Source of the DNA: Cyanophora paradoxa CCMP329 | Lineage: Eukaryota; Plantae; Glaucophyta | Direction of reading: 5' to 3' | Assembly: GCA_004431415.1 (NCBI GenBank) | Contig: QPMI01000545.1 | Span: 62,001-126,000 of the forward strand | DNA length: 64,000 nucleotides | Shown here: positions 1-30,800 of the stretch, one piece after another | Layout: each line of letters starts with the position of its first letter | Position numbering within the stretch: position 1 is the first letter of the stretch | Program-made: the position numbers and the translations under genes | The notes under the pieces: model-generated | Database searches by the model: none | What the model saw: only the letters and a program-made list of their open reading frames with translations | What the model was told of the DNA's origin: nothing

Positions 1-813
1 ACCTTGCCTGCGAAGGGCGAAAAAGATGAGGGGAGGAGAAGGGAGAGAGCGGGGCGGGTCGAGAAGGGTGGGGGGAGGAGGGCGAGGGGTAAGGGACGGG
101 GCGGGGCGGGCGGGATCGAGGGGGGCTACGCACGCCAGTTGGGGACGCCGGCCTGCGGGTCAGATGAGCCGTCAGGTCAGAGGGAGACATGCAGGGCCCA
201 GAGCTCATATGAGAGGCGCGGGCGCGCCTCGTCCTTGGTGCCGAGGACGTCGATGCCCTTGAACATGTCGAGCACGAAGTAGTGGCCCTTGACGCACGCG
301 AGCTCGTTCAGCTCGTGCTGGTCCTGGATCCACACGTGGAAGGGCCGCGCGTCCGCCCCGTTGTGGTTCAGCTGCGCGGCCCCTCCCCGAGGGCCCGGAT
401 CAGAAAGGGGACGGGACGGCCGGCGGCGGCGGCGGGGGCGGCGGGGGGATCCGGGGGCGGCGGACCGCCCGCTTGAACTTGGCCGCGGCGAGAGCGACGA
501 CCTCGACGTCGCGCACGAAGCGCTTCTCGCCCTTCGCCCTGCGCCGCCGGTGCTCCCCGAAGCACGCGGCCAGCGGGCCTGCGGCGAGGGAGCGGGCAGA
601 GCCGGCGTCAAACCGGCGCCGGCGACGAAAAGGACGCAAGGCGCTAGACTGGCGGCCCCAGCCGCGCTTGGACCTACTCACGGCAAGTGAGACAGTCCAG
701 GCCAAGACGGCCGACGGGCGGCGACGGCTAACGCTTTCGAAACGGCGCAGAGAACGGTTTTAAGCCGTGCCGACAGACGCACCGTTCGACCAGCAGCTGA
801 AGAGGCCTGGCAT
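1..813 (-). CDS. Paladin-like (PTP-like phytase / phosphoinositide phosphatase) protein, 5' part; multi-exon, continues off the left edge
   Basis: Spliced exons read ...LACVKGHYFVLDMFKGIDVLGTKDE|AGVPNW|RKV, resembling the paladin N-terminal segment as I recall it (GRYFLVRD..KMDVLGT..GAPNFRQV). The start at ATG 813 (MPGLFSCW) is tentative. Confidence 0.7.
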
Positions 814-899
814 TGTCGGACGAGTTACCTTAAGCAGCGAGGTCCTTAAGTAACCCAGCTCAGAAGCCCTTCGATGTCGGCTCGCACGGCGACTACAGG

Positions 900-3800
900 A
901 TGCAACGCCGGCGACGGTCAGAGCGGGGCGGCCAGCAGGCGTTGAACTCGCTCCCCCCCCCCCCCCCCCCCCCCCCCCTCGAGAATTTGATCCCGTCCCC
1001 CCTCTCTGGCCAAGCGGAAGCCGGCGACATGGAGAGCGACGACCTGCCGCCCGGCGTCGAGCACGCCCAGCATTCGCATGCACCAGCGGGCCCCGCATTC
1101 TTCGCCAGCGCGCCGCTCTTCGCTAGCGCCCCAATCCAGCGCCAACACGACATGGACGCGCCTCCGGGAACGGCGGATTACGTAGATTTGGACGAAGTTG
1201 TCCAGCCTGAGCCGCCATTCGTCGCACCGGAGCCCCCTCCTTACACGCCCGAACCTGCCGCTCTCGCAGCACCGCCTCAGCCGCCATCGAACTTCGCCAC
1301 CCTCCCACATCCGCCTTTCGCGTCCACGCCAGCGTTCCCGCAAGCCTCCTCGCCCCAGCCCCTCGTGCACGTCTCGCCAGCCGTCGCCGTGTCGCCGATC
1401 CCGGCCGCGGCGATCCCGCTCCACCATCCCGTCGAAGCCGCACCGGCGGAGATGCAGCTCGAACAAGCGCCGACCCACGCTCCCGAGCGGCACGCGGAGC
1501 GCAAGAAGACGGCCGAGCAGCGCTGGTCGGGAACCGTAATGGCGCGCCCCGCCCCCGCCCGCGCGCCGCTCGAAGCTGAGCGCCTCCGCAGGTGCACCAC
1601 GCGACTGCGGACCTCGCTGAGGCATGCGCCGCCCCGCCGCGCCGCGGGACGGGCCGCCCCGCCGCGCCCCGGCGCTGACTCCCGGGCAGGTCTGGCGGAC
1701 GGCGTACGCCGCGGACGGCTTCGATGTTGCGGGCGCCGACCGCGCCACCGTCTCCGACTGCCTGTGCGCGCGAGCGCGCGCGCGAGCGGGCGCCCCGCCT
1801 GCCGCCCGGCAGGCGGCGCTGAGGCGCGCCGCGCAGGCCCGAGGAGCTCGAGGGGAACGTGCGCGTGCCGCACCTCTCCGCGCTGCGGACGCTCTCGCGC
1901 TCCGAGCGCTGGACCTGCGCCCTGGCGCTCCTCTTCCGCGGGCCCGAGCGCTCGGGCCCCGACGCCCTCCTCGCCTCCCTCTCCTCCCACGCCCGCGTAC
2001 GCCCCGCCCCGCCCCGCCCCGCCCCAGCCACGTGCGCCGCAGACGCCGACGCCGGCGCAGGCGCTGTACGTTCGGCTGCCGGCGCACCGCCTCTTCGCGT
2101 TCGGCTGGGCGGCGGCGCGCGAGATCTTCCCCTCCCTGGCCGACCTGGCGCCCCCCGGGGGCTACGACCTCCTCCTCCTCGCCGCCGCCCCCACGCCCGA
2201 CCCGGAGGCGCCCGAGGCGGCCCCGCCCGCCCCGCCCGCCCCGGCGCCCCGGCCCGACGCCGACCCGTCCCTGCTGCTCCTCCGCGGGGACGCGGCCGCC
2301 TCGTTCGCCCGCCTCTCCGCCGGCGCCGGCGCCGCCCCCCAGGAGCCCCGGGACCCCCTCGCCTGGCCGGCCCGCCGCCCCCGCCTGCCGTACTCCTCCC
2401 CGCTCCCGCCGGCCTCCAGAGCGGCCCTGCCGCAGGCGCAGGCGGGCGCGCCCCCGCCCGTCGAGGCTGGCCGGGCGCACGTGCTGGCGAGCCACCCGCA
2501 CGCGTTCCTGAACCTGGCGGCGCACGGGTACGCCAAGTCGCCGCAGGACCTCTTCATCCACCCGGAGACCGTCGCCCGCTTCAAGCTCAGGGAGGGCGAT
2601 CACCTCGAGGCGAGTTTCCCGTACCCCCGTGCCTTTGTTTGGGGCTGAGCCCGGTGCAGGGCCCGGTGGGGCCGGCGCGGGGTCGGAAGAAGAACTTCCG
2701 CACGCTGGAGACCATCTACTCGAAGAGCGCGCGGCCGCCCTCGCCCCCGGCCCCGCCCAGCGCCCCCAGCCCGGAGCCGGCCCCCCGCGCCCCCGCCCCC
2801 GTCGCCCCCGTCGCCCCGCCCCCGCCCCCTCGCCGGGTGCGCCCCCCCCTCCTCCGCCCCTCCCTTCCCCCCCCCCCCCTCCTGCGCCCCTTCTGAAGCG
2901 TACCCCTCCGAAAGGCCGCCCACGGTTCCCGAGTGGGTCCTCCCCACCAACCTGGTGACTGTGACCGGGACGGTCCGCCCGCTCCCCGTACCCCCCGGAA
3001 AGCGCACCCCGGCGTGACCGCGTACCCCCCCTCAGGTGAACGTGCGCAAGGGGAACTTCGCGTTCGTGCGGCCGGGGCCCTGCGCCGGACCGCCGCCCCG
3101 CGTGCGCCCCGCCCGGCCCCGCGCGCGTCTCCTCGGGTTCGAATCCGCGCAGGACGGATTCCTCTCGGTCGCGATGGTGCAGCGGTACCGCCTCATCAAC
3201 GGCGACAACGTGGAGGGTGCGTACCCCTCCCGCCTCTCGCTTCCCTTCCACCACCGCGCGGCCGCCGACGCGGATCGGGGGGTACAGGCGAGGCGACGGT
3301 GGTCGGGGACGGGCAGCCGTGCATCGTCGACCTGCGCCTCGTTAACGGCCGCCAGGTCCCGAACCCCATACCCCTCATCCCCCCGACGGTCCGCTCCGCC
3401 CCGTCCCGCCATCCCTCTCCCTCTCCCCCCCCCCCCCCCGCCCCTCACCTTCCCCTCCAGCTCCACCCTGGGCTGGGGTACGCGAACGCGGCGGGGGAGG
3501 TCGCGTGCGCCGGGCTCGTCGCGGAGAACTTCGGCCCGGGGTACGCCGTCCTCTTTTTCCGCTGGCCGCTCCCTCGCCGGCCAACTCGCCGGTGCGCAGG
3601 ACGGGCCACCTCATGATGGCCACGGACGGGTACAAGGTGCACCAGCCGATCCCCCTAGCTGCATAAACGCGTACCCCCGGACCTGTCCCTGACCCCCCCC
3701 GCAGAAGGACCCGACGAGGAGCCCGTTCATCTCGCAGCCGATGATGAAGGCGAGCGAGCGCCAGCCCGCTCACTCCCTGTCGCGTACCCCGGGCGCCGGC

Positions 3801-3921
3801 GCCCTCTGACGCCCCCGCGGCGCAGTCGGAGGGCCTGCGGACGGGTCTCTGGGTGGCCGGCTTCGCGCGGCGCGAGGGCGGCCGCTGGGAGCTCGTTCGC
3901 GTCGTCTCCTGCCGCCCGTAA
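900..3921 (+). CDS. Pro-rich protein with three Rho-RNA-binding-like OB-fold repeats; multi-exon
   Basis: Exons give AFLNLAAHGYAKSPQDLFIHPETVARFKLREGDHLE|GPV, then VRKGNFAFVR|DGFLSVAMVQRYRLINGDNVE|GEA, then PFISQPMMK|SEGLRTGLWVAG...ELVRVVSCRP*. Each resembles Rho [31 protein letters not shown]. Start is ATG 900 or 1029; stop TAA 3919-3921. Confidence 0.7.
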
Positions 3922-4011
3922 CCCCGCCCCCGCCCACGGCCCCTGCAGCTGCCGCCTCTCCGCATAAACTCTGTCGTCGTTTCGTACATTCGATCGCGTG
4001 GATTCGGCGCG

Positions 4012-5706
4012 CTACCGTCCGAAGAGGCGGCCGAAGAGGCCGCCGCCGCCCTCGCCACCGCCCTCGCCCTTGAAGTACGCCTCCAGGTCCCTGCGAGGGC
4101 GCCGAGTACGGCTCAGGCGTCTCTTCGAATCCGGGGCCGAGCCGCTGGTCCAGCGAGCCCCGGGGGCGCACCGGCCCATGGGGCGCGCCTCGAGGCCCGA
4201 GGCGAGCTGCTCGCCGCTCCCGTCCTCCCCCACCCGGAACACCTGAGAGGGGGGGGGGGTATCGGATGAGGGGGGGGGGGCGGGAAGGAGGGGAGGGTAC
4301 GGGCGCGCCTGCCACTTGGCGGCGCTGGTGTACTGCAGGGCGCCCTGCACCGACGACGTGATCCCCGTCTTAATCTGTGTGTGTGTGTGTGTGTGTGGGG
4401 GGGGTATCGTGAGCTGGAGGGGATAAGATGGGAGTGGGGGTACGGCGGGGCGCGCCTGGACGGTGCGGAAGGCGTAGCAGGGGGCGAACTGGCCCACGAA
4501 GGCGCGCGCGTCGCCGCTCCCAAAGCCGAAGTCCTACCCCCCGGGGGAGCTCGGGGGAAGGGGGGGGGGGGGGGCGCGGCGGGCGGGCAAGGGGGTAGGG
4601 GAAAGCGGACCTCGTCGCGCCACATCCTGAAAAGAGAGAAAGGTCGGAGGGGGCGAGGGAGGGCCAAGATGGGGAATGGAGGGGGATACCGGTTGAGGAC
4701 GATGACGGGGCGGTCGGCGCAGTTCTCGTCGACGTATCTGACGCGGGTTGGTGAAGGGGGGGATAAGAGGGGGTACAGGGCCATGGGGGTAAGGATTCAG
4801 GGGTACGCACTGCTTGAACTTCTTTATCGTCTCGCTGCTGGCGAAGCTCACCATGATGCCCTTCTCCCCGTAGTTCCACACGTACACTGTACCCCGGGGC
4901 CGGCGTGAGGCGGGCCCCGCTCGGGGGCGCCCCTCTTCGCGCGTACCCGAGTCCGCCTTGTCCAGGTACCCCTTCTCCTCGGGCTCCCCGTCGGACAGGG
5001 CACTGGCGAGCTGCGGGGCCGCGTCACGCGGGGCCAGCAGGGGAGTCGTAAAGGGGGCGCGCCTGCTTCTGGATCGGGGCGAGGGCGATGAACTGCTGCC
5101 CAATGCCTCCGGGCCTGCGCGGGCGGGCGTCGCGCGCGTAACTCCAAGCCCGGCCGGCCGGCCGGCCGCTCTCACCAGTCATCCAGGTCAGTCTTGCCTG
5201 GGAGCGGCGCCGGGCGGGCGTTAGCTAAACGATGCAGCCGACGCGAGCGGCCCTGCGGCGCGCGTCGGGCGCGTACCGATGAGCGGGAGGGGGACGTCGA
5301 CCAAAAGCCTCGTGGCGCCGGCGTCCAGGTCGGCCCTCAGGGCTTTCTTGGCTGCGGCCGAGATCTAGATTCAAATGCAAGCCCGATCGAAATCTGCCGC
5401 GAAGGAGGCCGCCGCACCTTGTGCGATGGTCTGGTCCAAGGTCGAAGGCATGGGCGGGTCCGCAGCGGCCCGCGGGGCGAGCGGGGCGGCCGGCGACGGG
5501 CCAGCGGCCTCTCGCCTGCGCGTGACGGGCTCGAAGCGCCGGTCCGCGCCTCCGAAGATCAGCGAGGACGCGCTGCCGACGCCCGTGGCCGACGCAGCAC
5601 GCGCCGGCCGAGGCCGAGGCCCAGCCTGCGTGCAGGAAGCGTTCGGCACGGGCGTGCAGGACGTCCTCGACTGCACGCCTACGGGCGCTGGGCTAAGGAA
5701 CGCCAT
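4012..5706 (-). CDS. Plastid-targeted DUF1995 family protein; multi-exon
   Basis: Ser/Ala/Pro-rich presequence MAFLSPAPV..., then PSTLDQTIAQ|AAKKALRADLDAGATRLLVD, DRPVIVLN, DFGFGSGDARAFVGQFAPCYAFR and GALQYTSAAKWQ|VF...EARP, which follow the DUF1995 motif order. Confidence 0.75.
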
Positions 5707-15519: not shown

Positions 15520-16372
15520 CGAGGTTCCCGCGGCCAGGCGCATGCACATGCGTAGAGCTTGCGAATCTCTTAGAATGCATATACTATCAATGTGGAGGGC
15601 TGCGGAGGCGAGGGCGCACGGAAATATGTGCAGGCCTGTGCAGGATCGAAAATTTGGCGTCGGCTGGGTTCTTGTGCTCTTTCGCCCCCGGAGAGCTTGC
15701 GCAAAGCTTGGAAAAGCTCTCAAATGAATACTGTACGGATGGGCATGCGTGAGGATGCGAGGGCGCGCGGAAAGATGGGCAGGTTTGTCAAGGATCGAAT
15801 TCTTGGGGTCGGCTGGGTCCTCGCGGCCCGGCGCATCTGCAAAGCGCGCGGAAGGATTTGTCTACATCTCAAATGTTTATACTATTGTTCCGCGCATGCG
15901 CCGCGGCGTGGGCGTGCGGAAAGATGTCCGGGCCTGTGCAGGATCGAATTTTCCGAAGTTCGCCGCCGGGTGCCTTCCTGCACTGTTCCGGCTCCGAAAA
16001 GCGAATCGCTGGAGCGCGCAGGCCGTGCTATGTCTATGCGCGTGAGTACGCATCGATTGCGCCCGTCGCGGGACCGGGCGGGACCGGCTGGGTCAAAGTT
16101 TCCGCCGACTCTTCGCACTGCAGTGTCGGCGGCGCCCGAAATCGAGCTTGCAGCGGTGCGCGCGCCGTCGGCTCTCATTCTGTACCGCTCTGGGGCGTTC
16201 CTGGCGCGCTTTCGTCGCGGGACCGGGCGGGACCGGGTCCCACTTTTTGGAGTTTCGCGATCGAACCGGGGTATAAATACCGGGATTAGTTCGCGAGAGA
16301 AATTCGATTTTCGCGTGACGCCCACGGGAGAGCCGAAATTCGATATTCGCGCGACGGCCATGGGAGAGCGGT
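15520..16372. repeat. ~149-bp tandem repeat block, copy 1
   Basis: Anchor aggatcgaa at 15642, 15791 and 15940; gtcgcgggaccgg at 16065 and 16214 (all 149-bp spacing). Confidence 0.85.
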
Positions 16373-17644
16373 CTCCCTCGAGAAAGCACGATCGGAATTC
16401 CTCGAGACGTCCGGACATGTCGGCGTACAAGTCTGAGATTTGATCCATGAGAGAACTCGATGGAAAATTGCGTGACGTCACTGTCGAGGTGTGTGCGTGA
16501 ATTGATCCACGATGAACACGGGGTACGGACGTAACCTGGAAGTTACAGGAATTTCGATCGCCGACCCGGATTTCCGAAATTGGCAGGGCTAATTACCCCT
16601 AATGTTTTTAATTAGAGTTCCCCAATCAAAATCCGCCAAGTACGTAGACGCGTACGATCGATTTTCCATGAAACTGTTTTATTTTTGGTGGTGGCGCAAA
16701 AATGCGGGGAAAATGAATGCGCAAAATGGTCGAAAATGTGAAGGTTCCGCCCACTCCGAGAGGCTTACCACTGTTACGTATACGGTGTTACCAGCCTAAT
16801 ACCAGGTACAACTTACCACAAAGTTACCAAGGAGGTCACGCGGGGGCCGGGGCCCGGGGCCAGAGTTCCAAAATTTTTTGTAGGCCCAGGAGACCCCCAA
16901 AAAATTTTAAAAATTTTTAAAAATTTTTGAAAAATTTCTCAAAAATTTTTGCCATACAAACGAGAAGGCACGTTCCAGAGGCGCGCAAACGCGCTCTAAA
17001 CGTGCTCTTAAGGTCCTCTTAACATTCTTGTAGCATGGGAAGTGGTCAGAAGTTTTATTTCGAGCCCATTTGGGCGAAGGCACACTCATGAATTTCCTAG
17101 GGCTCGCCAGGGGTACAGTGAGGTCTGAACCTTATCGACGTGCAGAGTGCCCCTATCGCATTGCTTATTGCTTAAACTTCATTATACATGCAAGAGATAC
17201 GTATAGGAAGCTTATTACGACGTGTTCTGCACGAGAAAAGGGCCCCCCGAATATTTTCTCGTGCAAAATTTTTTGAGCGTCCAGCCGAGACCAAAAAACA
17301 AGATCCGTGCTCCTGCGGAGCACTAAGTACGGCGAAGCCTCGCGGAAGCCCTCACTGAGTCACGGCCGCCGGGCTGTCACAGTAGGCGGCCTGCTGCAGC
17401 CCCGCCCATGGCCAGCTGTCCGGGTTTCGCCGGCTTGGCCATGGGCTGGCCTGCTATAGCCAGCTCTAGGGAGACCTGGTTGGCCAGAGAGCAATGTAAT
17501 GAGGAGAGGGAATATATAATTAATTATGGGAGGAGTTGGACCGGTAACGCTTGGTTTTTACTGGTGGAGCAGATTGAGAGGAGATTAATTTAATATAAAT
17601 AATAATGTTGGGGGGGAGGCCGGGGAGGGGCGCGCGAGCCCGAG

Positions 17645-19312
17645 GTCCTCGCAGCCAGGCGCATGAGCAGAGCTTGCGAATCGCTTAAACAGAATCTCGA
17701 ACGCATATAGCACCGATGTGCAGGGCTGCGAAGGCGAGGGCGCGAGGAAAGACGTGCAGGTCCATGCAGGATCGAATTTTCAGGGTCGGTTGGATTCTCG
17801 CGCCCTGTCGCGTCCTCGGGGGTCGTGAAAAGCTTAACAAAGACCTCAAATTACTATTGTAGCGATGCGCACGCGCGAGGACGCGAGGCCTAGGGCGCGC
17901 GGAAAGTTGTTCAGGTCTGAAGAGGATCGAACTTTCGGGGTCGGCTGGGTCCTCGCGGCCTGGCACATCTGTAAAGCGTGCGGAACGCTTGCTCTACATC
18001 TCAGATGCTTATGCTATTGTTCCGCGCATGCGCCGCAGCGTGGGCGCGCGGAAAGATCTCCGGGTCCGTGCAGGATCGAATTTTTGCCGACGGTTGGGTT
18101 CTCGTGCTCTTTCGCGTCTTCGAAGTTTGTGGAAGGCTTTGATAAAATCTCAAATGAATATACCAGCGATGCGGCCTGCGTGAGGACGCGAGGGCGCGTG
18201 GAAAGTTGTTCACGTCTGAAGAGGATCGAATTTTCGGGGTCGGCTGGGTCGTCGCGGCCCGGCGCATACGCAAAGCATGCGGAAGGCTTTGTCTACATCT
18301 CAAATGCTTATGCTATTGTTCCGCGCATGCGCCGCGGCGTGGGCGCGCGGAAAGATGTCCGGGCCCGTGCAGGATCGAATGTTTGATGTCCGGTACCTTC
18401 CTGCACTGATCGGCATCCGAAAAGCAGATTTCGGGCGTGCGCAGGCCCTGCTATGTCTATGCGCGCCAGTACGCATCGATCGCGCGCGTCGCGGGACCGG
18501 CCGGAACCGACGGGATCAAATTTTCGGCCGACTCTTCGCACTGGAGTGTCGAGGGCGCCCGAAATCGAGCTTGCGCACTGCGGTACGCGTTTGTATGGGC
18601 CCATAGTGCTTGAAGAAAGCTCCAACGGAGGTTTAACAATGGCTAAATGGTAAGTCAAAGTTACATACTTGCAGTTTTTTTCGATAAGGTTCTGGACTTG
18701 ACTTTGCGCCGTACCCCCCCATTTTGCCTTAGGTTCTGGAAAAAGCGCCGATCTTGCTCGCTCAAAATTGAACCGATTGGGAGCAAATTGACCCAAACGA
18801 TAGATGACCGGCTAGATAGATCGTAGACGCCGCGGCGGGCGTTTTCTAACTAAAGCGCCCGACTTCCTTCTAAAAAACTTTTGCACTGGCCGTTTGAGCA
18901 AAAAAACTTTTTGAAAGTTGCCCGGTACCCCGGCGTTTTTTGGAACGTGACTCAAGGGCCGACAGAATCCGCAAGCTTAATTCAATGGCTGGTAAAAGCT
19001 CTACATGCTTGCAATCGAGCGTCATAGCAGCGTGCAATGCATGGCTGTGGCGATCGTAGAGCTAGCGGTCGCGATCGTGGAGTTGCTTCCAGGACTATGG
19101 GCCCATACAACGCCGTACCGCAGTGGCGGCGATGCGCTCGCCCTCGCGCGTCATTCTGTATCGTTCTGGGGCGTCCCTGGCGCGATTTCGTCGCGGGACC
19201 GGGCGGGACCGGGTCCCACCTTCTGACTCGGACTGCGTTTGTCGGAGGTTAAGTACCGGAATTGATCCAGAGGGAAATTCGATTTTCGCGCGACGCCCAC
19301 GGGAGAGCGGTC
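17645..19312. repeat. ~149-bp tandem repeat block, copy 2 (interrupted by a CACTG element)
   Basis: Anchor aggatcga at 17768, 17923, 18072, 18222 and 18371. Colinear with 15520-16372 up to gggagagcggtc. Confidence 0.85.
18576..19125. mobile_element. Non-autonomous CACTA (EnSpm/CMC)-type element, 550 bp
   Basis: Termini CACTG...CAGTG with ~40-bp imperfect TIRs (cactgcggtac..gtatgggcccatagt). 3-bp TSD GCG at 18573-75 and 19126-28. The empty site is visible in the paralogous block near 16141-16165. Confidence 0.85.
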
Positions 19313-19375
19313 GTCTTAGGGGAGCCAGGACGCTAAAAATGGATCTAGAGAGGTCTGTGGGGGTTAGGGTGGCCG

Positions 19376-20551
19376 ATGTACCCCCCTGGGGTGCGTGCGC
19401 CTTGTCTTCCGCCTTCCAGCCTCCCCAGCCTCAGCAGCATGTATCCTGTCGTCGTTGTTGGCGCCTCAGCGGCCCGTAGCTCAGGTGGCGGGCCCGTCCG
19501 CGGCCCCTTGTCATCTCGCCCGACTTTCCAGCCTCCCGCGACGGCGCCCTCGTTCTCCCGTAGGTTCCCTAGTACCGTTGGGTCCGAGAAATTCCTGATT
19601 CGGTCGTCGGACGTGTATCTTTACAGCGTGACCTGCAGATATTTCAGCGTTACGGCCCCTCCTGCTCAGTCCGACGCGGCCCGCGCGCTCCGCGATGGCC
19701 CCAGCAAAGCCCAGATTCGCCGAGATATGACTGATTGCTTGTCTGGCCTCGACCCCGCCCCGGTTGTGACCAACTGGGGCAAGCGCGCACTTCTGCTGTC
19801 GGTTGAGGAGGCGCACACAGATGCAGCCCGCAAGCTGCTCCGTAGGTCGGCGTTGCAGCATTTAGCCAGCTTCGACCTCACACAGCTCGGGGCCGACAAG
19901 TTCAATGCCCCGCCGCCGCCTCCGGATTCGCAGCGCGACTCTGGTTATCGCGATCCCTCGGTCAGCTTCGGCCCTTTCCGCACAGTGCCCACCAACACTC
20001 GTGTCTTCTTCGAGTGGCTCGTCCAGCTCGGCTTCGTCCCGGGCAAGGTGCATGTCATCAAGTCAGCAAGCGTCTGGACGAAAGTGTACCTCGACGAGGT
20101 CCCGCCCGTCGCCAGTCAGGCTCGCCTGCCCTTCTCTCATCAGTTCGGCAACGAGATCGTTCAGGTCAGCGGCAGCTGGGCGTTCTGCAATCGGAGGGGC
20201 TGCAACAGCGCGCAGCACTCGGAGCACGCCCCGCATACGCGCAAGGGCGTCACAGTCAACGGCCAGTCGCAGTCCGTCGAGCATTACAGCGGCCCGAACT
20301 GGACCGACCAGACCGGCCCCAGTGCCATCGTGCCCAAGGCGAACGACCCCCTCAACTTCGACATCGTCTTTCCGTGGGCGGAAGACCTGCAGCTCGCTCT
20401 GCAGGTTCGCTTCAGCACTTTTAGCTATAGATGGCCCCCTGGGTCTTTCCGGCCTCATAGGCCGCCACTCGCAATCGATCCGCTTCTCGAGCTCATTCTC
20501 CTCTTTCTCGATCGTGCAGACTGCCGCTGCGTCCACCTCGGGCAGGTGTGA
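19376..20551 (+). CDS. LINE ORF1 (putative nucleic-acid-binding protein)
   Basis: 391-aa intronless ORF immediately upstream of the APE-RT ORF, with Cys/His motif CNRRGCNSAQHSEH. Confidence 0.65.
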   Translation: MYPPGVRAPCLPPSSLPSLSSMYPVVVVGASAARSSGGGPVRGPLSSRPTFQPPATAPSFSRRFPSTVGSEKFLIRSSDVYLYSVTCRYFSVTAPPAQSDAARALRDGPSKAQIRRDMTDCLSGLDPAPVVTNWGKRALLLSVEEAHTDAARKLLRRSALQHLASFDLTQLGADKFNAPPPPPDSQRDSGYRDPSVSFGPFRTVPTNTRVFFEWLVQLGFVPGKVHVIKSASVWTKVYLDEVPPVASQARLPFSHQFGNEIVQVSGSWAFCNRRGCNSAQHSEHAPHTRKGVTVNGQSQSVEHYSGPNWTDQTGPSAIVPKANDPLNFDIVFPWAEDLQLALQVRFSTFSYRWPPGSFRPHRPPLAIDPLLELILLFLDRADCRCVHLGQV

Positions 20552-20684
20552 GGTGCTCCGGGCCCCTGTCGATTCCCGCTGCGTTTCGCGGCGGGGCTCC
20601 TCCTTCGGCCCTCCCTCGTCCCCGACCCTCGTTTTCTCCTCCAGCTCCCGGGCTCGGGCCCTCGAGCTGCACCACCCCCCGTAA

Positions 20685-23600
20685 ATGACGTTTAGATTTC
20701 TTTCTCTCAACGTAGCAGGCAAATTAGATCGAGCTTTTAATGATGTGTTAGGTAAATCTTATCGCTCTTTTCTTTTTGATTGCCTCCGCGACAGCGCGAG
20801 GCATTCGGTTGTGTGCTTGCAGGAGACTCATGTTTCTTCTCCTTCTCTATCTAAACGCCTTGCGCGTGCTTGGGGATCGACCCCTTCGTTTTGGTCTCAT
20901 AACCCTAGCGGTCAAGCTACTCAGGGGGTCGCCACTCTCTTTCCTGGCGATTCCCCTTTTTCGATTCGACTGTTGACTCCGGTTGATAGTCCTCGACTGC
21001 AGCTTTTCTTATTCGAGACCAAATTCGGTCCCATTTATTTGTGCAATGTATATGCTCCTACTGATGATTCCGAGCGTCGCGGCTTCTATGACACTCTTCT
21101 ATATACTCTTGAATCCGTGGTTCCCTTCGATGGCCGTCTCATTTTAGGAGGAGATTTAAATTTCCACGAGCTGCCCTCCGATGCTCCTGGCCCTAGTCGC
21201 GGAACCCTTCCCCTGATGCCTTCGAGTTGATCCGGGCTCGTTATGGCCTTTTTGACGCCGGGCCTCGCGCTAGAGCTTGTTTTAAAACTTGGAGCCGGCC
21301 GCGGCCGGATGGGGGATCGATTGAGTCCCGTCTCGATTATTTTTTCCTCTCGTCCTCCCTCCGCGATTGGGCCGTCTCGCTACGTCCGTGGACGGCTTAT
21401 TCTGCAGTCGGCGAGCCGCGCAATTCTGATCATATTGGCATTTTTCTCACGCTTAAAGCTCCAGGGATTTCGCGCCGCGGCCCCGGTCGCTGGCGCATGA
21501 ACTGGGCGGCGTATGGCAAACGGCCTGAGTATGCTGATCTCATTTCTGCTGTAATTCGTGACTGGCGTGCTGAGTGGCCCTTGGTTACTGATCGCGTCCG
21601 CCGATGGGACGCCCTCAAATCAGAGCTCCAGCGTCGCGTACGGGCCTGGGAGCTTGATGAGAAGCGCAGGCAGAAGGACGCCTACGTCTCTTCTGTTCGA
21701 GCTCTCGAAGCTCTCATCCGTCGCCACGCCGCTGGTTCTATTAACGATATCGCTTTCCGCTCACTGCGCACCTCCATGATGCGTACGTTAAATTCGCTTG
21801 TGTCTGACTATGCCAGACAACATTCGCGCAACGAAATTCGTTTCGCCGCGGCGCAAGATGGTCGATCTAGTAAAGCCTTTTTTGAACACTATTTGCCGGA
21901 TTCGCATGCACGGTTTACCGAAGGGCTTCGGGCCCCGGACTCCGAAGGCCCGGAGGTCGCGTCGGACGACCCCTGTACTTTGCTTGAGATTTCTTCTGCC
22001 TATTACGCTCATCTATATGACGGTGCCGCAGCTCAGGCCGCGGTTGATCAGTCGCTGGCTGAGCGGACTGGCGTTGCCTCTCTCTATTCTCCCCACCGCC
22101 TGCTCCCTACTGAGTCTGCGGATCTTGACTCTGACCTATCGCCTGGAGAGCTGCTTCGCGCTTTTAAGGAGATGTCTGGCGGCGCCAAGTCTCCTGGCGT
22201 CGATGGCCTCCCTGCTGAATTTTACGTTCGCTTTTTTGATGAGATTGGCCCCGACTTCTGTGCTTATCTCAGTGCTATGTATGAGTCCGGTCAGGCTTCT
22301 GAGTCCTTGCGGCACGTCCTTATTACTCCTATAACGAAGCCGTCAACGGACCCTACTTTGATTGCGAATCGCCGCCCAATCTCTCTATCTAATGTTGAGG
22401 AGCGTGCAGTTGAACGCGCCCTTTCCAACCGTTTAACACCACTCATGCCTGGCCTTGTATCCCGCTTTCAATCCGGCTTTATTCATCGTCGCTCCGCAGT
22501 GCACCAGGTCATGCTCGTTTATCTATTAATGCATTACGAGGGCGGTAATCCTGAGCTTGAACAACTTTGCTTCGGATTTCTCGATTTTTCAAAAGCTTAT
22601 GACCGCGTTAACTGGAGCTTCCTTTTTGGTCGCTTGAACAGTTCGGCTTCGGATCTCAGTTTATCAAGTGGGTTCGCTTACTTTACTCTGATCTGCAGGG
22701 TTCTGTTCACATTAACGGCTGGACCTCGGCCCCTTTCCCCATTCGATGCGGAGTGCGTCAGGGTGGCCCCCTGTCTCCCTATTTGTATAATTTGTGCACG
22801 CACCTTTTAGCCCTTTTGATTAATGCTGACGTGCGTATACGTGGTGTCCGCCTTTCTCCTAACTCCCTATGTAAGGTACTCCAGTTCGCGGACGATACTG
22901 TTCCTTTAATCTCTTCTTTTGCCGAGCTACCCTTTTGGAAAGAGTGCTTTGATAAATATTGCCGGCTGTCTGGCGCCCTTATTAATCTCGACAAATCTAA
23001 CCTTCTTCCGCTCCGCGATATTCCTGCGGACGCGTGGCCTAGCGTCGAGGACTGTCCCTGGCGGCGCCTCCAGGTGACGGATCTCCCTCCCGCTGAGAAA
23101 ATCCGCAAGTACCTGGGCTTTCCGCTAGAGCCCGATCTGTCTCGCTTCTGGCGTAAGAAAAATGCTGCTCTTGATATCCGTGTGCAGCAAGCGAAAACCT
23201 ATCACATGCCGATGCGCTCCGGCGTGTTTCTTGCATGGGCAGTCTTTATTGGATCCCTTCATTATGCTCTGTATTTGCTTGACCCCCCTGATGCCCAGTA
23301 TTCTGCGTGGCAAGACAAGCTTCGTTCTTTCGCCGGCGTGAGCGGGCAACTTTCGAAGTATATTTCTCCTCTGCCGTGGCGTCAAGGTGGTCTTAACTGC
23401 CCTGATATTCGTGCTTTTTCTCTGTCGCTAAAAATGAAGTGGGTGGCCTTGTTGGCCGACCCGTCCTGCTCGGCTCCTTGGAAGGAGTACCTCTTGAGCA
23501 AACTGGACGCTCAGCTGGCGCCCTTTTCCTACGGCCCCGCCCTTATCTCGCTTCGTCTCCCACTTGACGGTCTTGACTTGCCTTCTATTTGGAAGCAGGC

Positions 23601-26501
23601 TTTCTCGGAGTGGTCTCAGCGCCAGGGCGTGTGTCAGCCTCATACCTCGCTCGAAGTTTTATCCCAACCTCTTTTCTTTAATCCCCTGTTCGATGCTCCG
23701 GGTGCCAAGGTCGACTGGAGTCGTTGTGCACGGTCTGGCTTGCTGCGAGTCTGCGATATCTGGGATTGTACCACCCGGGGGTTTCGGGCTCCAGCAGCTG
23801 CCTCGTCCGCCCTCCATTCCTTTTTCCCTCGTCTGTGCTCCGCGCTCCCGGCAGCATGGCGCCAGGTCCTTGAGGCCCCTGCCCCGCCACCTCAGCATCT
23901 CTGGTGGTCTGGACCGGACGCCTCGGTTGCTCTCCTTCGGGGCCCGAGCGGTACTTTTGTCGCCTTCCCCGTTCGCGATAACCAGATAATTCCACGGGTG
24001 CTGGATTACGTGCCGCGTGTTCCTTGCCGCCCTGCGGCTTCCCACCCTGTGGGCCTATCCTCTAATTCAATTCTGTCTCGTTTGCTTCCGCTGCACGTTT
24101 GCTTTAGCGCTGTCTTTCTCTCTCTACGTCGCGGAACCCTGCCCGGTCTTTTTATTCTAGGAGCAGGCCCCTCTGCCTTTCTTTCTCTTGATAATCTTGC
24201 GTTCACATTTGCTCGTATGCTCCCTCTCCGCCTCTCATCTGTTCGTCGCTTCTACTGCCTTGAGGTCCAGCGGCTTCGCGATGTGTCCAGCCACGCTCAG
24301 ATGCCCGATGCTAAGTGGGGTTTCCCGGCGCCTTGTCTCCGTCCCGTCTTCCTCATCTTGTCGTCCTTCAGTGTTTCCCGATGCTTTGGATCGATGCTCT
24401 TTACCGTTTGCATTTCAAATTGTATCGTTTGGGCGAGCAACAGTCGCCTCGCCGTCGTTTCTGTCGGGTTTGTAATGACGGATCTGCTCGCTCTCACGCG
24501 CACGTTTTCTCTGAGTGCCCGCTTTCTCGTTCGTTCTGGGATTTCATTCGTGAGCGCCTGAATTTCTGGGCTTCTACTCTTCCACCGGAGGAGCGTGAAG
24601 AGGTCGAAGTGCCTGACCTCTCTCTCTTCCACATCCTCTCGGTTCCGGATTTATCTGGGCCCATTTTGCGCAGTAAAGTTAACCCCGCCTTCTGCCTTCG
24701 CTCACTTGGAGCGATCCTTGCTGGCGTATTTTCCATCCAACAGGTTGCTCGCGCTCGGTGCGATCTTGAGGAGGTTGACATTGATGCACCTTCTTACAAC
24801 CGCGCCGCGCTTGTTGCCGCCTGGGACAGAAATATGTCGTACCTAGAGTTCACTCTTCCGCAGGCTTCGGCCTTGTTGGAGGAGCGGCGCGCTCGCTTGG
24901 CTGTTGCTGACGCTGATGATCAGGATGCCTCGGATGCTGAGTCTGGTGCCGGTTCTCATCGTTCTAGTTCAAGCTCTGATTCTGACTCGCCCGACCCTCC
25001 TTCTTCGGGCGGTGCTGACAACCTCGTCTCTTCGCGTGACATCGATTCTGTCCTCCGGAATCCTGCGGAGTTCGCCGTTCGTGGGAATGTCCCGTTGGGG
25101 ATCCCTGGTGGTCGCCCGCCTCCTGCGCCGTCCCCTCCTGCTCTGGCCCCTGTAGTGACCCTTGGGCCCGTTCCTATTCCTGCTCTCGCTGCCCCTCTCG
25201 ACGCTCCTTTTCCCCCATTCCCTGCGGTCCCGATCCCTGTGCTCCTTGGCCCGCTGGCCCCGCCTCTACCTCCTCCCTCCTTACAACTTGCTGTCACGGG
25301 GCCTCTTCACTTGCCTGTTCCCCGGCAGGTCCCTGGTCATCTTGCAGCTCCGTACCCCTTCTTACCTCTTCCCCTTGCTCCTCCACTTCCGCCCCCGCGT
25401 GGCCCTCTTTCTGACGTCCTCCTGGTTCAGCCCCTCTTCAGCCCATCCTTCTTGCCCCGCTTCTGCAACTGTGACGCCGGGCGGCACTATCTTTTTGCAT
25501 GCTCCTCCCGCCACTACGCCCCGGTCTCTTTGCGTCTGCATCCACTTTCCCGGGTCCGCTTGCAGGCCCCCTCGCCTCCAGAGCTCGCCATCACTTCGGC
25601 CTCCCTCGCCTCCGCTCTCGATTCTCCATACCCTTCGAATAGCCGCCTTCTCTCTCCTCCTCCGCCCTCCCTCCCCCCCTCGAGCTCCGGGTCCTCGGCC
25701 TCTGCCCTGCTTCCGAGTGTTGGCGAGACTGTCCTCTTTTCGGTCTCCCCGTCATTCCGACTCCCTGCTCCCCCTTCGGCGCCTCGGGTCCCATCTGCGG
25801 GTCTTATCCCGCTTCCTGGCGCTCGTGAGATTCGCCGCCGGCGCCCTCGTCGGGCCCTTGCGCCCTCGAGCTCGTCTCTCTCTGCGCCGCCCATGACCCC
25901 CGTGTCATCTGATCCGGCGCCACCTGACCTTTCTCCTGCTTCGCTGCCCTCTCTTCGGCGCCGGCAGCGATCCCCGTCACCTGCTCGCGGCCCTTCCCCT
26001 GCGTCCGGATCCGACCCTTCCTCGGCTCCCTCCTCGCCTCTTCCGCCTCGTAGGCCTCCGCCGCGTTCCCGTCGGCGGATCTCTCGATCGACCCTGGACT
26101 CTCCGCCTGCCACTGTCTGTGGGGTACCTCCGCCGCCGTGTTCGGCGCCGGCTGTCAGTACTTTGCTCGGTAGCTCCCCCATCGTGGCTCCTCGGGGCCT
26201 CTTCGTCGTCGTCGTTCGCTGGGTTCCGGCTCCGGGTCAGATTTCTCGCCGGGCTTACCTTCTCCTGGCTCTGCTCCTGGGCCCTCAGCTCCGGGACCGG
26301 CTTCCCCGATCTCCTCCCGGACTCGTGGTCGTACCCGTCGCCGGCTTGCCGAGCCTACGTCTCCTTCTACTTCCCTCCGGCGGTTTGCCGGGCCGGACCC
26401 TCCGGCCTTTGTTCTTGATACCGGACCGCCGCCTTTGCCTTCGTCTTCTGCTTCGCTGGTCGTATCCCGCCGGCGCCGGCGTACTTCGTCTTATAGTTTA
26501 G
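20685..26501 (+). pseudogene. LINE ORF2 (APE endonuclease - reverse transcriptase - zinc finger - Pro/Ser tail), split by three 1-nt frameshifts
   Basis: APE motifs SLNVAG, LQETH, NVYAP, GGDLN, SRLDYF, SDH. RT motifs KSPGVDGLPAEFY, RPISL, QSGF, LDFSKAYDRV, GVRQGGPLSP, QFADD, KYLG. Finger CRVC..HVFSEC. Frameshifts near 21212, 22633 and 24318. Confidence 0.9.
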
Positions 26502-27866
26502 TTCGGTCTAGTTCGGATTCTGATCGTAGTGTTGATGCTAGAGTTAGTTTCAATACTAGCTATAGTCCTCGTGCTCGACCTGTTGTTCGCCGTCGTTTGC
26601 AGTTCGACTGCCCGTCTCGACCCGGTCGGCTTTAGTGATTCCTTTGACTGTCCTTTTGCCTGCTCTTGATCCGCCTGCTCCGCCTCCTGTGTCCTCCTCG
26701 ACCTTGTGCCGTAGCTCTGCCTTTCGCGTCGTCCTGCTTCGCCTCCGCCTCCGCGTCGTCTTGTTGTTCCTCTTACTTGTCTGCTTCCTGTTATTTATCT
26801 TTCTCAAATTTGTCCTCCGCTTCTTAGTGATGTAATTCCTTCCGATATTGATGGTATCTCTAGCTCTGGCTCTTCTTTGTGTCAGTCATCCTCTGTCCCT
26901 AGATCTGCTCGATTTCTCGTCTCTTCTCGATCTGTCTCGAGCTCTGTGTCTTTTCTTTTTTATTGTCGTTTTTGGCTCTTTGTCTTATCTTTCTTCGTGC
27001 TCTTGTCTTAGTTATTTTGCTTTTTTGTCTTTAGGCCCCCTGGGCAGCCCCCGCAGTGCTGGTGTCTAGAGACTGTGGCCGGTAATTCACCAAAAAAAAA
27101 AATAGGGTAGCAGTGTTATTAGCATCAATCGCCTCCGTGTCGAGGCAGAATTAATAATTCTGCCTCGAGGGAGTGCGACGCGGAAATTATTTAGTAGGGG
27201 GGATCTCGAGTGGAAAAAAAGGTTAAAAAAGGAATTTGGCTCGTTGGTTTTTGGGTTTGAGAAAGAGGCTTCGCCTGATTTGAGAAAGAGGCTTCGCCTG
27301 ATTTTGCAAAAAATTTTACAAAAAATTTTGTTTTATTTTTCGAAAAATTTTTCGGCCGGAACCCTGCCCGGGGCCCGCCGCGGCCCGCGGAGGGCCGCGG
27401 GGGTGACGCGGCTGGGCGGCGCGCCGGCGGCCCGCCGGCCCCACCACCCGGGGCCGGGCACCCCCGCCGCCCGCGGCCCCCGCCCGGCGCCCGGCCGCCC
27501 GCGGCCCGCCTCAGGGCCGCCTGGCAGCGCCTGCGACTGGAGGCTGCGAGGCCTAGGCTTCCCCGCCTAGCCGCGGCCTCCTAGCCTGTGAGAGTCCTAG
27601 GGCAGCGAGGCTGCGCTCGCCGGACTTGAAAAGACTCTGATGAGAGTTCGACTGCCTGTGAGGCTAGGCGGCTGGGACTGGCCTGGCCCAGTGGCGCCGA
27701 CCGCGAGGCAGGCGAAGGCCAGGCCTACGCGCGCGCCGGGGCACGCCCGGCACGGGTGCCCACGGCGCAGCCGCCGATCGCGGTCCGACGCGGGGCTGCA
27801 GCCTGCAGCCTGCAGCCTGCAGCCGCCGACCCGGCCGCGCGGCCGGGCCCGCGCCCGCGGCCGCGC

Positions 27867-30800
27867 TCACGAGTCACGACGACTCGGGATCGCGGGGGAG
27901 GCGCCGGCCGAGCCGCCGGCGGGCGGGGCGGGGAGGTCGCCCCTCCTGCCCGCCGGCCCGGGGACGGCGGGGCGGCGAGGCGGGGGCCGGGGCGGGGCCG
28001 GGAGGGCGACGAGGGGGCGGGGGCGGGGCCGGGGCGCGGGCGGGGGCGCGGGGCCTGGGCGGGGCAGGAGGACGGTGACGCGGGCTCCCTCGATGCTGGC
28101 CGGGCCCCTGCGGCGGCTGCCCCGGGGGGCGGCGGCGGCGCCATCGAGAGCGCGGGGCCGGCGGGGCGCGAGGGGCGCCGGGGCCGCCGGGTTGGGCAGG
28201 GGCGAGGTCCCCGCGTCCGGCCGGATCCGCACGATGATCGCCGGGCCCTTGCTCCTGCGAGGGCGATGGGTCTTGTCCTATCGGGGGTGGGGGGGGGGGA
28301 GAATGCAGGGGGGGTACCGCTGCGCGAAGGCGTCCTCCTCGGAGCCGGAGCCCTCGTCGCCGCCGTCGTCGTTGAGGGAGCGCCCCACGCGCGCGACCGC
28401 ACCGGAGGCTGCGCGCAGGGGAAAAGTTGGGTTCGGAGGTCTGGCTTCCTAGAATTGTCCTTTAGAGCCACTAAAGAAGTTCGAGGCCCATCAGACTCGG
28501 CCTCTGGGTGGCCTCGGTCTAGGCCCGCTCGATGGAGGGCGCGGATGGCGCTCAGAACGTCTTCCGAGCTCCGAGCTCCGAGCTCCGGGGGGCGGGGCGG
28601 GGCGGGGCGGGGCGGGGCGCACGGGCGGGCGGCGGGGCGATGGCCCCGTCCTCGTCCTCGTCGCTCTCCGCCGCGCCGCTCGGGCGCCGCTGCGCCGGCG
28701 GCGGCGGCGGTGCTTGCCACGAGGGGTGCGCCGGCGCCGGCGCCGGCGCGGGACCGAGGCGGCCGGGCGGAGCGGCGCGGCGGGGCGGCCGGCGGTGGCC
28801 TGCGGGGCGGGGGGCGTCTCAGCGCGCGCGGCGGGGTCACGGCGGGCGGGGCGGGGGCGCCTCGGGGGCAGCGAGGGGACGGCGGGCGGAGGCGACGCTA
28901 CAGCCCTGCCGAAGGACTGGGCATCGGCGAGGGCGGGGGCCCGGCTTGGCGGCGCGGCGCACCTCGCAGGGGCCGGCGGCGCCGGCTGCTGCTGCTGCGG
29001 GGGCGGAGGCGCCGCAGCCGCTGGCGGGGCGACGGCGGGGGCGGCCTGCGCACGAGGCTGCGATCAGCGGGCGGGCGGGGGCGGGCCGAGCGGGGTGCGG
29101 CAGCTGCTGCGAACCGGACGGCGGGGGCCGGGGGCGGGGAGGGCACGGGCGACTCGGCCGGCTCCCCGTCGCTCTCCCGGTCGGCCTGCGACGCCGCAGA
29201 GTCGAGCGGGCTCCACTGCCAAAGGAGGCGGGCGGGGCGGGGCGGGCGGGCGGGCCTCGGTGACGAGGTCGAGGGAATCATTGCGGGGCAGGGAGGCCCG
29301 CGGCGTGTGCGAGCCCGTGCGCCGGTGCTGGCCCAGGCCCCCCGGCCGCAGCGACGACCCCGGCGTCCGAGGCTGCGCGCGGAGGTGCGCCTCAGAGGCC
29401 GCTAAAGGGGCGGGGCGGGGCGGGGCGCGCGTCCTCAGAGCGGAAGGAGACGGTGGAGACCGAGTTGGACTCGCTCGACGTCGACTCGGACGACGCCCGC
29501 CGCCCGTCCGCCGGCCCCGGCGCCGGCGCCGGCGGGGAGCCGCGGGGCCGCCCGCCGGACCGCAGACACCGCGGACGCCGCCGCTGCTGGCGCTGCGGAG
29601 GCGGCCGAGGGCAGGGCCGGTTTGGGCGCCGGCGCAGGGGCCGGCGCCGGGACCGAGGCGGCGTGAGCGAGGGGCGCGGGGGCGCCCTTGGGAGGGGACG
29701 CGTGGACCGGGGCGAGGGGGCGGCGGGGAGGGGCCGCTGCGGGGAGGGGGCGGCGGGGCGCGGGGCGGCGATGGGGACGGGGTTGGCGAAGGGGTTGGCG
29801 CCCGTGGCGCGGGGCGGCTGGGGCTGCGGCTCGGGCGCGATGCCGAAGACCTGTTCCGGGGCGGGCGGCCCGGCGGAGGCGGAGGCGAGGCGGGGCACCT
29901 CCTCGAGGGCCTGGCCCCGCCGCGCGAGCAGCGGGGGCGGCGCCTCCTGCGGCCGCGCCCGCGAGGGGTCGACGGGCAGGGACCCGTGGAAGGTCCAGTC
30001 CGCCAGGGCGCACGAGGCGTCTGCGCAAGCCGGCGGGCGGCAGGGTGAGCTGTGGGGGCGGGGGAGGGGCCGGGCCCGGCCGGGCACCCTTCGGGATGGG
30101 GTCGAGCTCGGGGCCACGGCGGGGGCCGCCGCCGCCGGCGCCGACGCGTCCTTGGCGTCTGCGTCGACGCGTCGGGGCGGGGCGGGGCGGGGCGAAGCGA
30201 AGCTACGCTGGGCGGGGCGGGCACGGTGGTGGGCGGGGCCGAGGTGGCGGGCGCGGCGGGCGCGGGCCCCCTCGTGGCCCGGGTCGTCCTCCTCCTCGTC
30301 CGACTCGTCCTCCCCCTCGCCCTGGGCGGCCCCCACGGGCTGCAGGGCCTCCGGGACCGTGCCCAGCAGCACGGCCCCCGCCGCGAGGAGGTCCTTGGGG
30401 GTCCCCGGGCGCCGCAGGAGCGCCCGCAGCGCCTCCGGGCGGTTGTTCGTGTAGAAGATGTGGAAGAGCGGCCACGGGCACCCCGCCGCCTGCGTTCGCG
30501 GCCGCCCTAAGGTAAGAGGGGACGGAGCGGGAGGGGGGTACAGCGCGCCTCGAAGAGCCGCCGGGCGGTCTCGTACTGCCCGTAGCGCCACGCGTCCTCC
30601 CCCGCCGCCTTCATCTGAGGTGGGAGGATGTTGAGCCGTACAGCTTTCGTGATAGGGGGTACGGCTCGCCTGGGCGTGGAAAAGGCTCCCGGGCGGGGCC
30701 GAGCCGACCTTCTCGCGGAGCGGCGCGGGGAGGAGCCCCAGCGCGGCCGAGACGTTGCAGGCCTGAAAAAAAGCTCTCAGAAGAAAGACTTTTCCAGGGG

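Follow-up and report, generated by a model that had tools for sequence, protein, structure and literature searches.

Can the RNA-binding barrel of the bacterial termination factor Rho persist in a eukaryotic nucleus as a gene of its own, and what would a chain of such barrels do in the absence of the Rho motor? The question is raised by a locus of the glaucophyte Cyanophora paradoxa CCMP329, located in a 64,000-nucleotide (nt) stretch (contig QPMI01000545.1, assembly GCA_004431415.1, positions 62,001 to 126,000 of the forward strand) that was analysed as a whole and is denoted here the window; all coordinates are window positions. An earlier interpretation of the DNA letters alone (hereafter, the sequence-only reading) had proposed an intron-rich gene with three tandem Rho-like folds and no ATPase. 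This gene, on the plus strand, encodes a 676-amino-acid (aa) protein, P0001. The probability that the gene is nuclear, spliced and expressed, and that its product binds single-stranded pyrimidine-rich RNA multivalently and without a motor, being built from a bacterial domain that was triplicated before the gene was duplicated, is about 0.6 in our estimate.

Domain content of the protein

In bacterial Rho, the primary RNA site is formed by Rho_RNA_bind, a cold-shock-like oligonucleotide/oligosaccharide-binding (OB) barrel. P0001 contains three such repeats:

2460-2743, plus strand: repeat 1 (aa 393-470), HAFLNL...QDLFIHPETVARFKLREGDHLEG, split by the GC-AG intron 2610-2659
2937-3355, plus strand: repeat 2 (aa 503-580), FAFVRP...RDGFLSVAMVQRYRLINGDNVEG, encoded in four exons including the 39-nt exon 2934-2972
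3476-3918, plus strand: repeat 3 (aa 597-676), GTGHLMM...SPFISQPMMKSEGLRTGLWVAG, with GD changed to GL; encoded in four exons, the most diverged of the three

In the Pfam comparison, P0001 matches Rho_RNA_bind (PF07497) in three stretches, with 63 bits against a cutoff of 27 (E 2.2e-17), and exon 2460-2609 alone reaches 24.7 bits (E 2e-5). The best Pfam stretch, in repeat 1, spans aa 407-456; a small hidden Markov model (HMM) matches aa 510-561 in repeat 2 and places the three repeats at approximately aa 395-464, 507-570 and 604-672. With Pfam matches admitted up to E 10, only two families were listed for P0001, Rho_RNA_bind and S1CSD-TOTE-2; neither the cold-shock domain (PF00313) nor S1 (PF00575) was listed at that threshold for the whole protein or the exon pieces, although the HMMER filters may drop very weak matches. 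In a phmmer search of the PDB, Rho accounted for 11 of the 12 matches, the twelfth being insignificant (E 0.89), and aa 406-459 were aligned to residues 62-115 of E. coli Rho. Each repeat was combined with the corresponding repeat of a Cyanophora paralog (described below), and the pairs were compared, using hhalign, with a Cyanophora-free profile of 70 bacterial domains; repeats 1, 2 and 3 scored 98.5% (E 2e-15), 97.8% (E 9e-13) and 95.8% (E 7e-9), respectively. Judging from these profile comparisons, the repeats belong to Rho_RNA_bind in particular and are not generic domains of the cold-shock or S1 type. The motif that the sequence-only reading had found in three segments is indeed present in all three, far beyond chance, and its proposed affinity with Rho holds against the cold-shock alternative.

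The match to S1CSD-TOTE-2 (PF22707) is borderline (27.3 bits against a cutoff of 27) and far weaker than that of Rho_RNA_bind on the same residues. None of the TPR, TBP and effector domains that make up the context of TOTE systems (PMC12458937) were found in P0001. Given the borderline score, the lack of these domains and the eukaryotic nature of the gene, identity with the S1/CSD-like domain of TOTE conflict systems was rejected.

The rest of Rho is missing. P0001 has no Pfam match to the RecA-type ATPase (ATP-synt_ab) and none, up to E 10, to the helical Rho_N subdomain (PF07498). Of the 415 profile positions of the NCBIfam Rho models (TIGR00767), only 55-111 align with P0001, and the score of 41.6 bits lies below the cutoff of 509; the ring-forming C-terminal domain of Rho is absent. 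The absence of an ATPase, as originally proposed, is thus borne out, and, with neither the RecA-type motor nor a detected Rho_N, Rho-style translocation along RNA or transcription termination would not be expected of this protein.

Gene structure, splicing and expression

A word search seeded with exon 2460-2609 recovered P0001, which is a public C. paradoxa protein (EukProt EP00741, model tig00021073_g18019.t1, 676 aa). The coding region extends from 1029 to 3921 on the plus strand, ending with a TAA stop at 3919-3921, and consists of 14 exons and 13 introns; the conceptual translation of one set of exons is identical to P0001 (scripted match to the genome):

Exons 1-7, plus strand: 1029-1541, 1592-1621, 1690-1763, 1837-1996, 2061-2609, 2660-2836, 2934-2972
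Exons 8-14, plus strand: 3036-3101, 3153-3216, 3288-3388, 3461-3540, 3600-3636, 3705-3749, 3826-3921

The introns are 50-97 nt long (median 68), nine of them GT-AG and four GC-AG (1542-1591, 1622-1689, 2610-2659 and 3750-3825); removal of the latter fits the joints in the RNA contigs, with small offsets. GC-AG introns make up about 1% in most eukaryotes, against which the share in this gene (4 of 13) is unusually high. The C content is 0.51 in the introns (G 0.28) and 0.43 in the coding sequence (G 0.32), and pyrimidine-cytosine (YC) dinucleotides occur at 0.32 and 0.24 per nt, respectively. The sense-strand C-richness of the introns that the sequence-only reading had called strong is therefore real but moderate only; C exceeds G in the exons as well. 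The literature searched offered no usable description of intron composition in Cyanophora.

Seven cDNA-like runs (three samples, two studies) contain about half of the sampled words of the region 700-4100, which fits exons without introns. Contigs of three of these runs from two studies (X1, X2 and X5) and of a 2012 run (X14) were aligned to the gene. The contigs of X14 follow the genome collinearly through the introns, so that this run represents DNA. The contigs of X1, X2 and X5 skip ten introns outright, with letters common to both sides of the joints explaining small offsets:

1542-1591, 1622-1689, 1764-1836, 2610-2659, 2973-3035, plus strand: introns skipped in RNA contigs
3102-3152, 3217-3287, 3541-3599, 3637-3704, 3750-3825, plus strand: introns skipped in RNA contigs

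Three of these (2973-3035, 3102-3152 and 3217-3287) lie inside repeat 2. For introns 1997-2060 and 3389-3460, removal was deduced from contig-length bookkeeping. Splicing is thus confirmed by the RNA contigs for 12 of the 13 introns; the joint that links repeat 1 to repeats 2 and 3 (2836|2934) was not seen and is discussed below. The RNA contigs start at approximately 1006-1016, about 13-23 nt 5' of ATG 1029, which is the first ATG of the observed part of the transcript.

With 13 short introns, a G+C content at third codon positions (GC3) of 0.91 and cDNA-like contigs from three runs in two studies, this is a eukaryotic nuclear gene, and the intron-rich gene of the sequence-only reading is recovered as an exact public gene model. 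It is scarcely credible that the finding is an artefact, be it bacterial contamination, a chance motif or mislabelled generic cold-shock or S1 domains. Such an explanation could draw on the borderline cross-match to S1CSD-TOTE-2 (27.3 bits) and on nothing else; the 13 spliceosomal introns, the host-like composition, the Pfam listing free of cold-shock and S1 domains and the predominance of Rho among the PDB matches all contradict it. On these grounds, the contamination and generic-domain readings were rejected.

An RNA contig carrying repeats 2 and 3 runs about 880 nt beyond position 4091 into a minus-strand neighbour (region 3824-4091 and beyond) the coding end of which is near 4015 and the introns of which are G-rich on the plus strand. 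Either the 3' ends of these convergent genes overlap or the assembler fused two transcripts.

Relatives and origin of the domain

P0001 was compared exhaustively, by phmmer, with 1.84 billion representative proteins; at E up to 0.001, only three others were returned, P0003, P0002 and P0004, and no full-length Rho. P0003, from Cyanophora itself, is the only eukaryotic relative in this set. A word-index search with aa 395-676 returned the query alone, as Pro-rich words filled the 8000 candidates, and tblastn with all six Cyanophora repeats detected no extra copy in the window.

P0003 (tig00021720_g23185.t1, 989 aa) is a paralog that matches Rho_RNA_bind in three stretches (81.9 bits), ordered as in P0001. 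Its linker is rich in Gly, Gln, Arg and Tyr and RGG/YGG-like (GGYGGGERRRYGG); linkers of this composition are typical of eukaryotic RNA-binding proteins. The repeats are followed by a complete acireductone synthase (enolase-phosphatase E1; aa 627-866, TIGR01691, 189.7 bits), which may be either a genuine fusion with this methionine-salvage enzyme or the product of two genes merged by the predictor. Each repeat of P0001 scores best against the same-position repeat of P0003, with a small margin for repeat 1 (78 vs 75). Within P0001, repeat 3 is not recognisable in pairwise comparison with repeats 1 or 2 (z 1.3-2.2), whereas its comparison with repeat 3 of the paralog gives z 11.8; the latter repeat, in turn, matches both repeat 1 sequences. 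Because the two proteins share the same three repeats in the same order, with best scores at the same positions, the triplication most likely predates the duplication that gave rise to P0001 and P0003. The triplication within one chain that the sequence-only reading had inferred accordingly stands for the gene model but is not unique to it, the same triplet being present in P0003.

The best bacterial matches to P0001 are P0002 and P0004, not full-length Rho. P0002, encoded in a 17-kb ENA metagenome contig with bacterial-looking neighbouring genes, consists of an extracytoplasmic function (ECF) sigma factor (sigma-70 regions 2 and 4) with two Rho_RNA_bind domains in tandem behind it. We know of no description of this architecture, which would couple an RNA-reading module to a transcription initiation factor. 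P0004 is a one-domain protein of 101 aa from a read-derived record and may be truncated. A profile word search limited to short proteins gave 2148 matches, with PF07497 present in 120 of 120 among the matches listed. Many short matches are cut-off Rho genes at contig ends. Several other short proteins with this domain come from long contigs; one of 84 aa, for instance, is encoded on a contig of 282 kb and one of 131 aa on a contig of 1.3 Mb. Short one-domain proteins from long contigs include P0012 and P0093, and such cases indicate that motor-less copies exist in bacteria. An Atlas feature search with the repeats gave only sub-threshold clusters of bacterial Rho_RNA_bind.

Bacteria are the most likely source of the domain, and the donor gene may have been a Rho_RNA_bind gene without the motor. 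According to Záhonová et al. (PMC6242988), cyanobacteria lack Rho, and no eukaryote was reported to have it until the full-length, plastid-targeted Rho of euglenophytes was described. The source had been proposed to be bacterial or endosymbiotic: the bacterial part of this proposal is plausible, whereas the absence of Rho from cyanobacteria (PMC6242988) makes an endosymbiont origin unlikely, motor-less cyanobacterial copies not having been searched for specifically. Horizontal transfer from a non-cyanobacterial bacterium is our default reading. In a tree of the domain (79 sequences, 81 columns), the Cyanophora repeats form saturated branches (length up to 10) outside a bacterial clade, and only the repeat 2 pair of P0001 and P0003 is joined (Shimodaira-Hasegawa-like approximate likelihood ratio test support, 85); the tree points to no donor lineage.

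Predicted RNA binding and its alternatives

In crystal structures of Rho, R66 and D78 read cytosine, and E108 and Y110 are residues of the pocket. The core primary site of E. coli Rho touches RNA via F64 and Y80 (PMC10491184). The clefts of Rho take up 5'-YC dinucleotides, and Rut recognition is defective in the Y80C mutant (PMC12360218). Alignment of the repeats to Rho gives the following correspondence:

Repeat 1: F64 = F408, Y80 = F424, R66 replaced by N, D78 = D
Repeat 2: F64 = F524, Y80 = F539, R66 = R526, D78 = D537
Repeat 3: F64 replaced by H621, Y80 = F638, R66 replaced by M, D78 replaced by S

The stacking aromatics are retained in five of six positions in P0001 and, likewise, in five of six in the paralog. 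By this alignment, a stacking platform for single-stranded nucleic acid is preserved.

Repeat 3 (aa 590-676) was modelled by AlphaFold2 with a 79-row Rho-family alignment, yielding a predicted local distance difference test (pLDDT) score of 85.4 and a structure composed mostly of beta-strands, with one short helix. Modelling with an alignment was limited to this repeat because the multi-repeat MAFFT alignments were wrong, either stacking 121 single domains on repeat 1 or misplacing the paralog. In a Foldseek search of the PDB, the matches to the repeat 3 model down to about rank 49 were all Rho N-terminal domains (template-modelling (TM) score 0.66-0.70, root-mean-square deviation about 2.3 A), and the nearest ESM Atlas models all belong to bacterial Rho_RNA_bind clusters. 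The model is compatible with a Rho-type barrel fold, although it is not an independent test of it.

Outside the repeats, P0001 consists largely of low-complexity sequence:

1029-1541, plus strand: N-terminal low-complexity arm (aa 1-171), Pro 21%, Ala 18%, with an acidic start (MESDD...)
1592-2459, plus strand: middle region (aa 172-392), rich in Ala, Pro and Leu
2744-2836, plus strand: linker 1 (aa 471-501), Pro-rich, with 50% Pro over aa 471-502

The Pro-rich arm of the sequence-only reading is readily recognised in aa 1-171, which match no family in Pfam or NCBIfam. The middle region has no match in these databases and no relative in the exhaustive search, and an Atlas feature search with aa 150-350 gave no usable match. 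Repeats 2 and 3 are connected by a linker that is short and conserved.

Taken together, these features suggest the following mode of action. Each barrel would bind a short single-stranded pyrimidine-rich segment of nucleic acid through stacking against its pair of conserved aromatics, and three barrels on flexible linkers would provide avidity for extended unstructured RNA. P0001 could then function as an RNA-binding or chaperone-like factor in the nucleus or cytosol, without a motor, analogous to eukaryotic proteins with multiple cold-shock domains or to poly(C)-binding proteins. The sequence-only reading had gone further, envisaging a mimic of half of the primary site of the Rho hexamer; such mimicry is unsupported, given the flexible Pro-rich linkers, the undetected Rho_N and the presence of R66 together with D78 in repeat 2 only.

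Several observations weigh against RNA binding by a three-barrel protein as proposed here. The binding itself is predicted from sequence. D78 is retained in repeats 1 and 2, but R66 and D78 occur together only in repeat 2; E108 and Y110 are conserved in none of the three repeats; and repeat 3 lacks both GD and R66. Given that the cytosine-reading pair is kept in repeat 2 alone and the pocket residues are lost throughout, strict cytosine specificity appears doubtful, except perhaps for repeat 2. The single-sequence AlphaFold2 model of aa 380-676, covering all three repeats, is unusable (pLDDT 38.6), and the Rho likeness of the repeat 3 model is partly circular because its input alignment is itself a Rho-family one. 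Finally, the joint 2836|2934 was not seen in the contigs of X1, X2 and X5, the only such case among the 13 introns, and none of these contigs was seen to carry repeat 1 together with repeats 2 and 3.

The intron at this joint is the following:

2837-2933, plus strand: intron 6, 97 nt, GT-AG, C 0.59

If intron 6 were retained, the frame would end at TGA 2894-2896. It is conceivable, but improbable, that this intron is indeed retained or is spliced to an alternative acceptor; the main product would then stop behind repeat 1, and repeats 2 and 3 would not be translated along with it. Such an arrangement would account for the only unseen joint and for the contigs of X1 and X2 with repeats 2 and 3 that enter the 3' end of the intron by 6 and 20 nt, respectively. 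However, the paralog model has repeats 1, 2 and 3 in one chain, and the 39-nt exon provides no separate start codon for repeats 2 and 3, which are spliced and expressed. Moreover, the RNA contigs break at the Pro-rich low-complexity linker 1, just before intron 6, which accounts for the missing joint.

The substitutions in the binding site could also mean that the barrels have decayed and now work in protein interactions or as scaffolds, without binding nucleic acid. The long branches, the composition unlike that of the bacterial family, and the disappearance of R66, E108 and Y110 from most repeats and of GD from repeat 3 are all in line with such decay. Nevertheless, the retention of the stacking aromatics in both paralogs and the RGG/YGG-like linker of P0003 argue for continued binding, and we regard degeneration as very doubtful.

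An unlikely alternative is that P0001 binds single-stranded DNA rather than RNA, on C-rich strands or C/G tracts, and acts in transcription or replication, similarly to Y-box proteins or to hnRNP K at C-rich promoters. The Rho N-terminal domain binds single-stranded DNA as well, according to the title of PDB entry 1PV4, and the window contains 19 C-runs and 24 G-runs of at least 8 nt, including a run of 26 C beside the 5' end of the gene. The sequence cannot tell DNA from RNA binding, and no DNA-binding or transcription-factor domain was found in P0001 with Pfam or NCBIfam.

A role of P0001 at C-rich introns, in the handling of nuclear pre-mRNA or in termination, as suggested in the sequence-only reading, is unsupported speculation, C exceeding G in the exons too. 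In a variant of this idea, a small nuclear family with Pro-rich and RGG-like linkers would read C-rich short introns or 3' regions and function in splicing or 3'-end formation, as KH-type poly(C)-binders do elsewhere; we deem this distinctly unlikely.

As to the site of action, early phenylalanine is typical of glaucophyte transit peptides, and the N-terminus of P0001 (MESDDLPPGVEH...) is acidic, with no early Phe, so that the lack of an obvious transit peptide noted earlier is upheld. Together with RNA contigs that start just 5' of the ATG, this N-terminus suggests that P0001 probably acts in the nucleus or cytosol. A muroplast or mitochondrial RNA factor, analogous to plant RHON1 or to the plastid Rho of euglenophytes, would be in keeping with the known eukaryotic Rho-related proteins, which are plastid proteins (PMC3458557, PMC6242988). 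That P0001 is such a factor seems improbable in view of the acidic N-terminus, the RNA contigs that begin only about 13-23 nt upstream of ATG 1029, and a plastid ancestor without Rho, as inferred from the lack of Rho in cyanobacteria (PMC6242988).

The closest known system for the favoured reading, a motor-less multivalent RNA binder, is the N-terminal domain of bacterial Rho (PF07497; PDB 1A62, 2A8V), which is homologous to all three repeats by profile match, superposes on the repeat 3 barrel predicted from a Rho-family alignment (TM 0.66-0.70) and shares with P0001 the largely kept F64/Y80 pair. Rho has one barrel per subunit and P0001 three per chain; P0001 has no detected Rho_N, no RecA ATPase and no hexamer-forming part, has mostly lost R66, E108 and Y110, and is encoded by an intron-bearing nuclear gene. 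The motor-less bacterial proteins (P0012, P0093, P0004 and P0002) resemble P0001 in carrying the domain without the motor, in tandem in the case of P0002, but have one or two copies, no low-complexity linkers and other partners (sigma-70 regions 2 and 4). The paralog shares the three repeats, their order and the GRW motif of repeat 3, and differs in having its own N-terminus, a Gly/Gln/RGG-like instead of a Pro-rich linker, and the acireductone synthase tail. Small single-strand-binding modules on flexible linkers that gain avidity for pyrimidine-rich RNA are also found in UNR/CSDE1 (multiple cold-shock domains) and in PCBP and hnRNP K (KH domains); the layout as a string of modules is like that of P0001, but the domain families are different, and P0001 has no cold-shock or KH match in Pfam. 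Arabidopsis RHON1 carries the Rho-N domain (PF07498), a different Rho module, to which P0001 has no match. RHON1 (PMC3458557) is a eukaryotic RNA-binding protein, named for the Rho N-terminal module, without an ATPase; it is a chloroplast protein and is reported to be specific to vascular plants. The euglenophyte plastid Rho (PMC6242988) is also the product of a Rho-derived nuclear gene of bacterial source, but it is complete, with motor and presequence, and is a presumed plastid terminator, whereas P0001 contains the barrel only, three times over.

The Rho_RNA_bind domain and its motor-less and tandem bacterial copies are thus already known; the triplicated, intron-bearing, expressed eukaryotic family is undescribed in the literature searched, which covered eukaryotic Rho_RNA_bind and Cyanophora Rho. 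Rho is regarded as a bacterial protein and its RNA-binding domain as a bacterial domain, and here the barrel alone, in triplicate and between low-complexity linkers of a eukaryotic style, constitutes an intron-bearing, expressed nuclear gene family of a glaucophyte, lineage-restricted as far as the searches show. The family would add a new class of RNA-binding domains to eukaryotes and a clean case of a bacterial domain co-opted without its enzyme, and it points to motor-less bacterial Rho_RNA_bind proteins, including the sigma-factor fusion, that are apparently unstudied.

The surroundings of the gene (GC 0.70-0.85) have several features of their own. Scans of the window for Rfam families and tRNAs gave no match. 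A long homopolymer precedes the gene:

953-978, plus strand: C26 homopolymer, just 5' of the observed transcript start, with RNA contigs breaking on either side

This run separates the first RNA contig of the gene, which starts at about 1006, from another RNA contig ending at 941. Several of the C- and G-runs counted in the 64 kb are intronic, such as 2867-2879 and 3425-3439. In an apparent intron of the minus-strand neighbour, a (TG)n microsatellite followed by a G-run occupies 4376-4398. Against a background GC of 0.65-0.78, the region 16000-28000 has a GC of 0.54-0.63 with a strongly negative AT skew, and a 2-kb stretch at 52000-54000 reaches a GC of 0.88 with a GC skew of +0.36.

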